Origin: Orbicella franksi
Taxonomy: Eukaryota
Direction of reading: 5' to 3'
NCBI GenBank assembly: GCA_964199315.1
Contig: OZ116706.1
Span: 4,898,001 to 4,962,000, forward strand
Length of the DNA: 64,000 nt
Shown here one piece after another: positions 43,800-50,225 of the stretch (within the stretch, counting starts at the first letter, position 1; every line of letters begins with the position of its first letter). A program made the position numbers and the translations under genes. The notes beneath the pieces were generated by a model, which made no database searches, was not told the DNA's origin, and worked only from the letters and a program-made list of their open reading frames with translations.

Positions 43800-46700
43800 A
43801 TGACCTGTAATGCGTCTGTGACGAATTCATGCGGACCAGGAGGTGTCTGCACTGGGACCGCGAATGCAAGTTCTTGTTTCTGCAGTGCAGGCTATGTTTT
43901 TAACGATGCCGGGCTTTGTGAGGAGCCAAAAATACCTATGGCCTATTCAGCGGTGGCATCTTTTTGTTGGCTGTGCTTTCTTCTTGTTTTGGGGAAGTTC
44001 CTTCGCCTGTACGTATGGATCTTCCAGAAGCTTTACCTACCTGCCTCCGTCATTGGCGGGATTCTAGGTTTGATTGTACTGCAAGTAGCCAGCCTCAACA
44101 AAGATGTTTCTAAATTTATCGCATTAAATTTCACCAGAGGATGGTATGTAATTTTTTTGTTGTGTGTGTTAGCTAAGAAGCGAGATGTGTAAGCTTAAGT
44201 GTATATAAATAAAGACATAACACCCCCTAAATACTGGTTTTGGTGAACATTTACATAGAGAAACCCAGTGATGAAATCGCAATTCAGCTTTTCAATCGGG
44301 AATTCTTGGGCGGAAATTGCGAAGTACTGCCATTAAGCTAAGGTTTTTACTACCTTGTCACGACGAAAATCAGGATAATAAGACATTTAAGTTAAGATTT
44401 AAATTTCAAAATTTAATCGTTCCACGAACATTAATTACACAATTTCCAGATTGTTTTTTCTTGTCGCGAAATTGCCTATCAAAAGATGTTTTTCGCTGTC
44501 ATGCGCTTTGAAGTACTCGTGCACCTTGATTTTAATTTGTGGAAAAAGTAAGGCTAGAAGTACATCACGTACAAGGGACCCTGATAATTACTTTCCTTTA
44601 TGGCCTGAAACAATATACTTTTCTTTTAAAAGATTGAAATTCAGACCAGTTGCCAGAGCCCACTGTCTCTTGATTTCTGCTGGCTGAGAGAGGGATGAGA
44701 GTTGACTGCTTATGGGCCTTACATATAATGGTGTAAACATGAGGTTTGGTAACCCCATTCTTCTGCCCCCATCATTTTGTTGCTGATTCTCAGTGTGCTT
44801 AGTACACAAAGTGCCTTGCACTGTCTCAGATCAAGGCCTCCTTGGTCAACAGGGTCGGAAAAATTCATTCTTTATGCCTTTTGCCCCTACCCTCCCCTGT
44901 GCAATGTTGACAAAACACTTTCATCTAACGCAAGGTTGCATTTTACCGTTTTCCAACATGAAAGGAGGCATGGGGTGCTGACACTTATTCTCGTGTAGTC
45001 TGTAGGTATTACGCTTATAATTTCATGTTTTTGCGCATTTTCAAACACATTCTGTCCAAGGTTGCAGTAGCTGGCCGACATGAGCTATATTTCTCTTTCT
45101 TTCTCCCTAGGTACAACCTGGCAGGATTCCTCATCAATATTGTGTTCTCATCATTGTTTCTTGGTACCCAGATTCCTAATGTGGCAGTGGTATGGAAGCA
45201 GGCAGGACCACAGCTTATGTATGGCATGCTTATTGCCTGGGGACAATGGATTGTCGCACTTGTTGTGACTGGTGCTCTGTTGGTAAGGTCTCCTTACTAC
45301 CCTAGTGGTCATCACCACATTTCTCCTATGATAATTTCCCTACCTGTATACATGAACTTTTTCTAATAGCCAGTTGTTCTATACTGAGAAAGCATGCATA
45401 CTTAACAATAATTGTTGGACAAGGCTGAGCAAAATATTGTGATTTGTCAGTGGCTAGTGGATCAATTATTTGCTGAAGCTGAAGGCTGATTGAGGCAAAT
45501 AATTAATCTATGAGACACTGACAAATGACAATATTGTGCAAAAACTGAGTCCAATAATTGTTTTATCATTCATTCACCAAGTTTGTTTTCATATTTAAAT
45601 AATTCTCTGACAGCTCAGGGAAGTGATCTGTCATTTTTCACACAAGAGCATGGTTACAATACACATGAGCACAGGATATTGTTTGCAACAAACCACATTT
45701 GGACGGTATTTTGCAAGAGCAGACCATTATTTGTAGGCAGTTATTTGCAGGTCATGTGGTGGGCTTTCTGTCAATGAAAAGGAATAAAAAATGCATTGAT
45801 TGATAAAGTGCACTAATGGTAATTTTAGCCACATTCTTCTTGTATTGCACCATTGGATGAATTAGTTACCAGGTCCCATTGTTTGCAGATTCCTGCTTTT
45901 GGTGTCAGTCCTTTATTTGCTACTGTTCTTCCTGTGGGGTTTGCAGGTGGTCATGGGACTGCTGGAGGACTCACGCCAACATACAAAGCAGTAAGTTACC
46001 ATGATGAGATAATTAACTTTATCATCCATCAAATGTTTGCGCTCGTGTGCAATTGGTCTAAACACATCATGTGACTGAATATGCCCCAGCGAAAACTGGG
46101 GAGTATAGCCAAGTGATTTTCCCTAATTTTCCAAACTGCATGTGTTGCAAAAAATATTTGAAGGATAGTGTTCATAATGGCCTCCATTTGGCAGGAAAAG
46201 TGCTTGGATATTTGTCCTTCAACATTATCTGTTCCTTAAAGCTCACACTTTTCCTTGAGCTATGTTCTCGGAAATTTGTTCACTTCCCAGAACAGAATGA
46301 TGTCCAAGAACACTCAGTTATCCACTGATCAGATCTCACACTAGATTGTTTTGTTCCACAGCTTGGATTTCCTAATGGCGGAGACTTTGGTTTGGCCAGT
46401 GCAACTCTGGGACTTGTTTTTTCAGTCATTTGTGGTGTAATGTTAGTTAACATTGCCACTCACAGGGGATGGGTGAAGAGGGAGAGGATTGACACAGCTC
46501 AGGAGGTCAAGATATCCATTAGGTTGGTATAGATAACATCCTTTTCTTTAAACTCTAACACACAAGTGTGTCTCCATGACTGCATGGGCCCCCAGAACAA
46601 ATAAACCCCCATTGCTATCAGGCTTTTAGCCAGATGGGTGTGCAGGTATCCTGTGGACAGCCACTTATTAAAGAAAATTGTTTTATTTTTCATAATAAAT

Positions 46701-49700: not shown

Positions 49701-50225
49701 GATTTTTTGGGGTTTTAATTTTTGCCCCAATTTGATAATCCCTGTCACTTGAAATCCGGAATACCTTCACTTTGAGGTAGACCTTAATATACTGTAGATT
49801 CAGGGCTCCAAAAAGTGCTAGCCAGTAGTCTGAGGTGAGTAGATTTTCCTTGCAGACAAGTAACTTTTTGCTGGCAGGATCACTTATCTCCTCAGACTTG
49901 TGGGAGAACAACTCTACTCCTGCATTTACAGTGGCTCTCCACCTTTTGAATATAAGGAAGTCTAAGCACTAATCCATGGGAACTCAGTTCAAGTTATGTC
50001 ACCATAACTAACATCTGTTAACTTTTCTCTCTTCCTGCTCCTTCCAGCTTCTACTTTCGCAAGCGATACACAGGGACATGTAGCTGCAGTTTGTGTGCCA
50101 TGGAGAAGCCAGGTGTTTTATCCCATGAAGACAGTTATCTGGATATCTCAGGAGAGAACCATGAAATTGAAAATCATCAAGAAATGGATGGACTTTCACT
50201 TGAAAAGCCTCAGGATGACATGTAA
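43800..50225 (+). CDS. Bacterial-type sodium/glutamate symporter (GltS/ESS family) with N-terminal EGF-like domain, 557 aa
   Basis: Nine phase-consistent exons: 43800-44143, 45111-45282, 45889-45990, 46362-46522, 46923-47157, 47601-47827, 48133-48327, 48789-48848, 50048-50225. GltS-like motifs: FQKLYLPASVIGG, FLINIVFSSLFLG, VGFAGGHGTAGG, FGMNTGVIATGLILLRMVDP, PFMGGG. The last exon is less certain; it is supported by a strong polypyrimidine tract and FFYFRKRY after the final TM helix. Confidence 0.88.
45405..45580. repeat. Palindromic intronic repeat
   Basis: Imperfect inverted arms 'aacaataattgttgg...aatattgtgatttgtcagtg...tcaattatttgc' and 'gcaaataattaat...cactgacaaatgacaatatt...caataattgtt'. 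Confidence 0.6.
47254..47530 (+). mobile_element. SINE family A copy (near full length)
   Basis: tRNA-like head 'gtggcttcatggttagtg...ggttcaagccctggc', a CORE-like 'cttggggcaagac...' segment, and a tail ending 'gcagact'. Confidence 0.85.
49073..49765. mobile_element. MITE with TIRs ggggtactctggatttcaagtga / tcacttgaaatccggaatacc
   Basis: Inverted termini at 49073-49095 and about 49745-49765, in the last GltS intron. Confidence 0.65.

Follow-up and report, generated by a model that had tools for sequence, protein, structure and literature searches.

How does a stony coral come to carry a gene for a sodium/glutamate symporter of the bacterial GltS type? The question is raised by positions 43800-50225 on the + strand of a 64,000-nucleotide stretch of the Orbicella franksi genome (contig OZ116706.1, assembly GCA_964199315.1; the whole stretch is hereafter the window, and all coordinates refer to it), where several stop-free pieces translate to hydrophobic protein segments, and which a first reading of the letters alone had described as an intron-containing animal gene and a candidate domesticated transfer from bacteria. 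We conclude, with a probability of roughly 80%, that the locus is a functional single-copy nuclear gene for a secondary transporter of the ESS (GltS) family, and that this gene belongs to an old eukaryotic clade rather than having been taken directly from bacteria by cnidarians.

Joining the stop-free pieces at the only positions compatible with GT/AG splice sites gives a model of nine exons, whose joined sequence is an open frame of 557 codons encoding a protein of 557 amino acids. Seven of the eight splice joints are present in Logan RNA contigs from two independent coral runs (X1 and X10), over 43100-49099, and each of the seven is bounded by GT..AG after a shift within the ambiguity reported by the tool. 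At the eighth joint (48848 to 50048) an RNA contig has a loose end, the 30 letters of which are those of window positions 50048-50077. The spliced form is unambiguous in the Logan contigs, and the nine exons with canonical splice sites of the original prediction are borne out by the RNA contigs, the GT..AG boundaries and the single 557-codon frame. Where the RNA contigs depart from the window within exons, nine of the 13 changes listed are synonymous, the pattern expected from purifying selection, and the composition of the coding sequence (45% guanine plus cytosine (GC), and 42% at third codon positions) is near that of the window overall (39.5%).

The coding part of exon 1 (43800-44143; joint 44143/45111) contains the start codon, a six-cysteine EGF-like module (approximately 43806-43919) and the first two membrane helices. 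It is preceded by 5' untranslated sequence with a minimum extent of 43643-43799, as RNA contigs start at 43643 (X10) and 43651 (X1) and continue into the coding part; an in-frame stop lies at 43710-43712, and no ATG occurs upstream of 43800 in that frame. Exon 2 (45111-45282) has GT..AG joints in RNA contigs of both X1 and X10, and RNA joints likewise delimit exon 3 (45889-45990), which encodes the first re-entrant hairpin, GFAGGHGTAGG (45937-45969, with GGHGT at 45946-45960), exon 4 (46362-46522), exon 5 (46923-47157), which encodes the central loop and the start of the second repeat, exon 6 (47601-47827), and exon 7 (48133-48327), which encodes the second re-entrant hairpin, FGMNTGVIATGLILLRMVDPE (48155-48217), and a subfamily-specific insert, KQLLHSPFMGGG. 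The 60-bp exon 8 (48789-48848) encodes the last membrane helix, and the joint leading to it (48327/48789) is found in X1, in X10 and in one raw read of a further run, X23. Exon 9 (coding part 50048-50225) encodes a juxtamembrane FYFRKRY, a CxCxxC motif (50079-50096), an acidic tail and the stop, the frame closing at 50223-50225.

Family and fold were tested on two proxies, reached through a search with exon 1 and then through full-length relatives: P0153, a coral transcript-derived protein 96% identical to residues 47-479 of the window protein, and P0148 from Nematostella, which is 76% identical. The Pfam model Glt_symporter (PF03616, cut-off 26 bits) matches P0153 at 51.9 bits, P0148 at 38.7 bits and a protist relative, P0154, at 54.9 bits, such that the GltS-type family, as first proposed, is recovered by way of the coral proxy. 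Exon 1 by itself scores 19.6 bits on PF03616 (model positions 4-62), under the cut-off, no other single open-reading-frame piece has a Pfam match, and a six-frame PF03616 search of the coral genome returned no match because single exons are too short. An AlphaFold model of P0148, built on 52 relatives, has a mean predicted local distance difference test score (pLDDT) of 85 and a predicted template modelling score of 0.82. Among Swiss-Prot models it is most like GltS from Shigella, Haemophilus and E. coli (template modelling score (TM) normalised by hit 0.69-0.72, over the whole length of these), followed by 2-hydroxycarboxylate (2HCT) carriers, and its best matches among solved structures are to CitS (TM by target 0.52-0.59). 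A sequence search of solved structures yielded no relative and no GltS structure, and look-alikes of exon 7 in the ESM Atlas gave weak leads only.

When the protein is aligned with E. coli GltS and three relatives of canonical type, the first hairpin, GFAGGHGTAGG, falls on the GGHGT of E. coli GltS, and this segment is near-invariant in the 52 relatives. The second hairpin, in which the predicted ..TG..ATGL.LLRMVDP motif was located at 48155-48217, reads FGMNTGVIATGLILLRMVDPE where canonical GltS has GFGLGATPTAIANM: FGMNTGVIATG is aligned against the canonical GFGLGATPTA, with the glycines present and the motif different, and the motif columns are invariant or nearly so within the subfamily. 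The hairpin is followed by an 18-residue insert (KQLLHSPFMGGG) that is absent from canonical GltS, and the subfamily has one extra C-terminal helix relative to the canonical proteins. On the strength of the profile scores and the structural model, we regard the protein as a true member of the ESS family (Transporter Classification (TC) 2.A.27) with a predicted elevator-type fold like that of GltS and CitS, belonging to a divergent subfamily.

The gene is old within cnidarians. The coral protein shares 76% identity with Nematostella P0148 over the full length, 75% with Actinostola P0149 and 75% with a Stylophora isoform, and homologs in Exaiptasia and Stylophora were also recovered in searches. 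Identity with Nematostella is unevenly distributed: the membrane core stands at 83%, against 47% for the EGF-like module and 35% for the tail. The Nematostella ortholog is likewise divided into nine coding pieces, the boundaries falling at the same residues as in the coral (114/115, 172, 205/206, approximately 259, approximately 338, 413/414, 478 and 497), and it has a PHD / zf-HC5HC2H gene upstream on the same strand and a Sulfotransfer_2 gene downstream, as does the coral gene; synteny was compared in Nematostella. With intron positions and microsynteny in common, the gene, its eight introns and its position predate the split between anemones and stony corals, which published molecular dates put on the order of half a billion years ago. 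Within corals, gene loss seems to be still under way, and a published study (PMC6214176) would imply a later loss in complex corals. As a separate observation, the Stylophora pistillata protein P0262 (LOC111334440 isoform X3) has the exon-3 region read in a shifted frame, its segment CFWCQSIICNYSTCGVCRRSWDC matching an alternative frame of window exon 3 (45861-46001, frame 2), and it is without GGHGT and without exon 8. It is probably a mis-predicted or non-productive isoform, and the shifted frame and missing exon account for its identity to the window protein of only 75%.

Beyond cnidarians, the closest relatives are eukaryotic, at 52-60% identity. Searches with exon 1 and with full-length proteins recovered Rhodelphis marinus (57%), a protein of the cercozoan transcriptome MMETSP0087 (60%), Diplonema japonicum together with another EukProt entry of the same cluster, Mucochytrium quahogii, several further MMETSP transcripts and many environmental proteins. 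Three of the environmental relatives lie on contigs that are unmistakably eukaryotic by their neighbours: P0154 is on a 141-kb contig (L001, run SRR23287145) beside STT3 and Spt5, P0265 on a 295-kb contig beside TIP49 and Tim17, and P0167 beside GILT. The protist relatives that we traced, P0154 and P0265 included, are intronless genes. The P0154 contig, which is gene-dense, intron-poor and of 66% GC, is from an unsampled protist lineage: among 5.8 billion proteins, none is more than 30% identical to its Spt5, and the Atlas describes its STT3 no more closely than as eukaryotic.

Bacteria have a large assemblage of the same subfamily, with at least 578 species genomes matched by two conserved peptide patterns (Aminicenantes, Acidobacteriota, Planctomycetota, Verrucomicrobiota, Lentisphaerota, Kiritimatiellia, Cloacimonadota, Marinimicrobia and others), and identity to the coral protein of 42-49% over the whole core. 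The earlier remark that the second-hairpin motif recalls cyanobacterial members found no support: no cyanobacterium is found among the best 80 bacterial loci, which belong to Aminicenantes, Acidobacteriota, phyla of the Planctomycetes-Verrucomicrobia-Chlamydiae group, Cloacimonadota and Marinimicrobia. The name "sodium/glutamate symporter" that these bacterial proteins bear rests on a broad Pfam domain, not on substrate evidence. One apparent archaeal link, P0163, labelled "Candidatus Heimdallarchaeota" and at first sight of interest for a eukaryotic origin through Asgard archaea, was discarded, as its 99% identity to Aminicenantaceae proteins (P0172 and P0176) indicates that the label is probably a binning error.

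To place the coral gene among these relatives, a tree was inferred under LG+C20+F+G4 from an alignment of 47 rows by 524 columns. Its outgroup consisted of E. coli GltS plus five acidobacterial GltS proteins of canonical type, and two very long rows (P0135 and P0133) were left out. Bacterial members form one clade (100/99), and a main eukaryote clade of 24 rows is recovered at 99/97; a small second eukaryote group, comprising Mucochytrium and relatives, is weakly placed. Within the main clade, diplonemids branch first and an EGF-bearing environmental group next, followed by an 11-row group (98/91) of Rhodelphis, the cercozoan, P0154 and the cnidarians, in which P0154 stands beside the cnidarians (89/96). 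Using approximately unbiased (AU) tests, a grouping of cnidarians with bacteria is rejected (log-likelihood drop 84.7, p ~1e-67), and a single clade of all eukaryote-type rows is not rejected (drop 0.18 units, p = 0.38); the groups tested were chosen after a first look at a quick tree. A first tree, rooted on the single very long row P0135, had shown eukaryotes as paraphyletic around bacteria, and this paraphyly disappeared with the six canonical GltS proteins as outgroup and was again absent when the two longest rows were dropped. We observe an ESS clade of eukaryotes, patchily distributed over marine protists and Hexacorallia, on a branch separate from the bacterial subfamily.

The surroundings of the gene are those of an ordinary animal locus. 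A search with the Nematostella ortholog finds a single locus in the whole assembly (497 Mb, 805 contigs). Upstream, on the + strand, lies a PHD-finger gene of several exons (33938-40999; PHD_2 at 47.7 bits on 34953-35387), and downstream, on the - strand, a gene of carbohydrate-sulfotransferase type (51174-52058; Sulfotransfer_2 at 191 bits), with PGAP2IP/CWH43 and Serinc genes further upstream. The Serinc gene has a feature of its own: a single open reading frame of 711 amino acids (13361-15496, - strand) in which the Serinc domain (residues 10-417) is followed by 290 residues with no Pfam match. Dispersed host repeats, which the original prediction had placed in the introns, were found in three of them. 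Intron 4 holds a repeat of about 156 bp (46620-46775) with at least 364 first-look candidates genome-wide and 80-84% identity in the 40 scored. Intron 5 holds a high-copy repeat (47290-47560, about 250 bp) for which at least 4702 first-look candidates lie on many chromosomes, with 84-86% identity in the 40 scored; its summed RNA-contig depth is about 1e5 in both coral runs, and it is a very abundant transcribed short element, like a short interspersed nuclear element in size and copy number. Intron 8 holds a lower-copy repeat (49060-49775) with imperfect inverted arms (49072-49106 and 49731-49765) and about 20 partial genome copies.

Four accounts of how such a gene came to lie in a coral genome have to be weighed. 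That it is a contaminant, a misassembly or a decaying pseudogene has practically no probability left: all that speaks for this is that the family looks bacterial and that two polyA runs contain almost no reads, and it is refuted by the eight spliced introns, the host repeats borne in those introns, the animal neighbours conserved with Nematostella, and the intact frame with mostly synonymous variation. That the first reading took the locus for a host gene and not for bacterial contamination, on the grounds of spliced introns, intron repeats of the same genome and animal neighbours, is in agreement with our results. Its further suggestion, that the coral or cnidarian lineage acquired the gene from a bacterium and later domesticated it, is one that we consider highly improbable. 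The family is overwhelmingly prokaryotic and its bacterial members are alignable over the whole core at up to 49% identity, both of which would suit such a transfer; however, the gene is common to anemones and corals, the closest relatives are eukaryotic (52-60% identity), the eukaryote and bacterial clades are each strongly supported in the tree, the AU test rejects cnidarians with bacteria at p ~1e-67, and the composition of the coding sequence resembles that of its surroundings. Orthologs widespread across eukaryotes had been named as an outcome that would speak against bacterial transfer, and what we find lies between: they occur in several supergroups, but only patchily.

Our preferred reading, an old eukaryotic clade of ultimately bacterial type, leaves two routes by which cnidarians could have come by their copy: inheritance, or uptake from a protist. 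Under the latter, the gene would have passed from a marine protist to a forebear of Hexacorallia, or of some wider group of cnidarians, and would have gained its eight introns later; we rate this as a strong contender whose chances nonetheless fall a little short of even. Named animals above the bacterial matches in two full-length searches of 5.8 billion proteins are Hexacorallia only (Nematostella, Actinostola, Exaiptasia and Stylophora), and the gene is otherwise known by name from protists of unrelated supergroups that are marine or were sampled at sea. The nearest relatives (P0154 and P0265) are intronless protist genes, and inheritance would require the gene to have been lost many times independently among animals and their unicellular relatives. 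Yet the Spt5 of the P0154 contig, itself without a close database relative, points to no donor lineage, and the intron density is that of an old resident gene. The path from coral to P0154 in the tree is 1.08, compared with 0.30 from coral to Nematostella (about 3.6 times as long), such that the split from P0154 is very deep unless the stem evolved fast; this ratio fits a very old split as well as a fast stem after transfer. Vertical retention, the second option of the first reading, in which a gene of early eukaryotes or early animals would have been kept by Hexacorallia and few others, is a credible alternative that we would not back at even odds. It is consistent with the order of named taxa in the main clade (diplonemids, then Rhodelphis, the cercozoan and cnidarians), which does not go against the species tree, with the ability of all eukaryote-type rows to form one clade, with the apparently ongoing loss, with the length of the path to P0154, and with features restricted to eukaryotes that cross subclades (the CxCxxC tail, in common with Rhodelphis and P0154, and the EGF-like module, in common with the P0009/P0143 group). 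It demands at least six losses within animals alone, with further losses in fungi and among the remaining opisthokonts; the full-length searches turned up no named animal outside the cnidarians, and congruence with the species tree is weakly tested as the tree rows are mostly environmental.

As to what the protein does, family and fold are the basis for proposing an elevator mechanism and Na+ coupling. In the model, two inverted repeats each contribute a re-entrant hairpin, and the protein would undergo an elevator-type movement like that of GltS and CitS. By analogy with the GltS family and CitS, it may work as a dimer, with substrate and coupling ion bound at the tips of the two hairpins and a Na+ gradient most likely driving the uptake of a small anionic solute, either an acidic amino acid or another carboxylate. 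The near-invariant arginine of LLRxVDP, directly after the second hairpin, could bind the carboxylate, as an analogy with 2HCT carriers suggests. Nothing points to a role in symbiosis: the gene is equally present in Nematostella, which is not known to host algal symbionts.

Several observations weigh against our overall conclusion, or at least against its functional part. The proxies on which family and fold were tested stand in for the window protein itself. On the GltS equivalog model of NCBIfam (TIGR00210, cut-off 310.75 bits), P0153 reaches 33.6 bits and P0148 has no match; two bacterial members of the subfamily (P0219 and P0286) reach 45-50 bits, and canonical acidobacterial GltS 323-408 bits. 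The polyA raw-read runs contain one read of the gene (X23) and none (X24), indicating that expression in those samples is very low or tissue-specific. The tree holds few named eukaryotes, most of its eukaryotic rows being environmental, and its root lies on a long branch. The tip of the second hairpin differs from that of canonical GltS, so the substrate may not be glutamate, and the neighbourhoods of 10 bacterial loci provide no consistent partner or substrate hint (amylases, a HAD hydrolase, GDPD, HflX, ferredoxin, TyrRS and, once, an SDF carrier). Finally, we know of no transport assay of any member of the subfamily, bacterial or eukaryotic.

Because the protein fails TIGR00210, glutamate is only a candidate substrate, and we rate it as rather less likely than not. 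We lean slightly towards a carrier of something else, be it a different amino acid, an osmolyte or a di- or tricarboxylate, or towards one that works in an organelle or as an exchanger. The equivalog score is far below the cut-off, with bacterial subfamily members scoring about the same, the second hairpin tip is altered and then followed by the 18-residue insert, identity to E. coli GltS is 17-18% in the structural alignment, and the fold is in common with citrate and malate carriers. Glutamate is favoured, in turn, by the ESS members characterised so far, which carry it (PMC12344293), by a first-hairpin GGHGT identical to that of GltS, and weakly by the one bacterial locus that adjoins an SDF-type carrier, which hints at acidic amino acids. 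The locus in question is from a Cytophagia metagenome-assembled genome (L056:4467-5693), where a dicarboxylate/amino-acid carrier of the SDF (GltP) type lies directly downstream of the subfamily gene; no SDF-like partner is present among nine other neighbour genes at seven other bacterial loci.

The eukaryotic proteins have additions at their ends that the bacterial ones lack. The N-terminal module of the coral protein has six cysteines (C3, C11, C17, C26, C28 and C40) with the spacing C-x7-C-x5-C-x8-C-x-C-x11-C, which is conserved, together with N-x-S sequons, in the coral, Nematostella and Stylophora. The Nematostella model shows it as two small beta hairpins (strands 16-20, 23-27, 33-35 and 38-40) with a pLDDT of about 80. 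Profile matches stay under threshold, at 18.5 bits against 21.5 for Pfam EGF on Nematostella residues 1-60, and at a sub-threshold 10.8 bits for EGF_3 on window exon 1. An EGF-like module is also found in the P0009/P0143 group, there with a signal peptide, and in the alignment it is absent from Rhodelphis, P0154 and diplonemids. The conserved sequons, the six cysteines and the reported fusions at the N-terminus of GltS in the TAXI-GltS proteins (natural fusions of an extracytoplasmic binding protein; PMC12344293) suggest that the N-terminus faces outward and bears a glycosylated EGF-like cap. At the other end, a tail of the form FYFR..Y..CxCxxC is common to cnidarians, Nematostella included, to Rhodelphis and to the protist protein P0154. 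The basic FYFRKRY directly after the last helix suggests that this cysteine-rich acidic tail is cytosolic; its pLDDT of below 50 in the Nematostella model suggests disorder, and the CxCxxC cysteines could, as a guess, be lipidation sites.

A 2025 paper on GltS states that the ESS family is not found in eukaryotes (PMC12344293). The present locus, its anemone orthologs and the protist genes on eukaryotic contigs contradict this, and reveal a eukaryotic ESS clade with additions of its own (the EGF-like cap and the cysteine-rich tail) that anthozoans have kept under constraint since anemones and corals separated. Public databases already list the proteins under automatically assigned names, and the Pfam domain appears, without comment, in a table of a 2018 comparative-genomics study of corals; a literature search on the gene identifiers and on PF03616 in animals returned nothing relevant and no study of the gene. 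With the nearest relatives being eukaryotic, a "bacterial-type" gene in an animal need not reflect a bacterial transfer into that animal, and the whole subfamily, bacterial and eukaryotic, has been named "sodium/glutamate symporter" on weak grounds. The striking transfer story is thereby weakened, and it is the existence and age of the clade and the substrate of the subfamily that merit follow-up, with the coral and Nematostella proteins as tractable candidates for a transport assay. Na+-dependent uptake of dissolved amino or organic acids by cnidarians is known physiology, and we know of no molecular identification of the carriers. The EGF-capped branch may be the carrier, or one of several, serving uptake from seawater in anemones and stony corals, although we consider it unlikely; were it so, the gene would offer a way into how cnidarians acquire nitrogen and carbon heterotrophically, and a clean case for deciding whether patchy "bacterial-type" animal genes are relics or protist imports.

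Comparison with known systems sets these features in context. E. coli GltS (TC 2.A.27.1.1) belongs to the same Pfam family and gives the closest structural match (TM by hit 0.72, residues 1-400), with the GGHGT first hairpin and the order of helices in common. It differs in having only 17-18% identity to the P0148 model in the structural alignment, in its second hairpin (GFGLGATPTA, against GMNTGVIATGLxLLRxVDP in the coral), in lacking the 18-residue insert and some 50 further C-terminal residues with one more helix, and in belonging to the TIGR00210 group that the coral protein, by its proxy (33.6 vs 310.75 bits), fails to enter; the coral protein is moreover encoded by an intron-bearing animal gene, with an EGF-like N-terminal module and a predicted cytosolic tail. 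CitS and the 2HCT carriers (TC 2.A.24) are of the same fold class and provide the best solved matches, and their elevator mechanism is established from structures; they are a separate family, at 13-16% identity, with an extra N-terminal helix of their own and citrate or malate as substrates.

Nearer at hand, the bacterial ESS subfamily matches the coral protein in the motifs of its two hairpins, in the insert and in the additional C-terminal helix, and falls on the same divergent branch of the tree as the eukaryote clade, but its proteins are of about 450 amino acids, without N-terminal module or tail, and have GFEGGHGT where most eukaryotic members have GFAGGHGT. The homologs of Nematostella, Actinostola, Exaiptasia and Stylophora are orthologs, with the same nine exons and neighbours in the case of Nematostella, whose protein has so far carried only automatic annotation ("predicted protein / Sodium/glutamate symporter"). 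The TAXI-GltS proteins of Lachnospiraceae (PMC12344293) resemble the coral protein in placing an extracytoplasmic domain at the N-terminus of a GltS-type carrier, and indicate that such an architecture is viable; theirs is a substrate-binding protein on a canonical GltS, whereas the coral has a 40-residue EGF-like module on a divergent member of the family.

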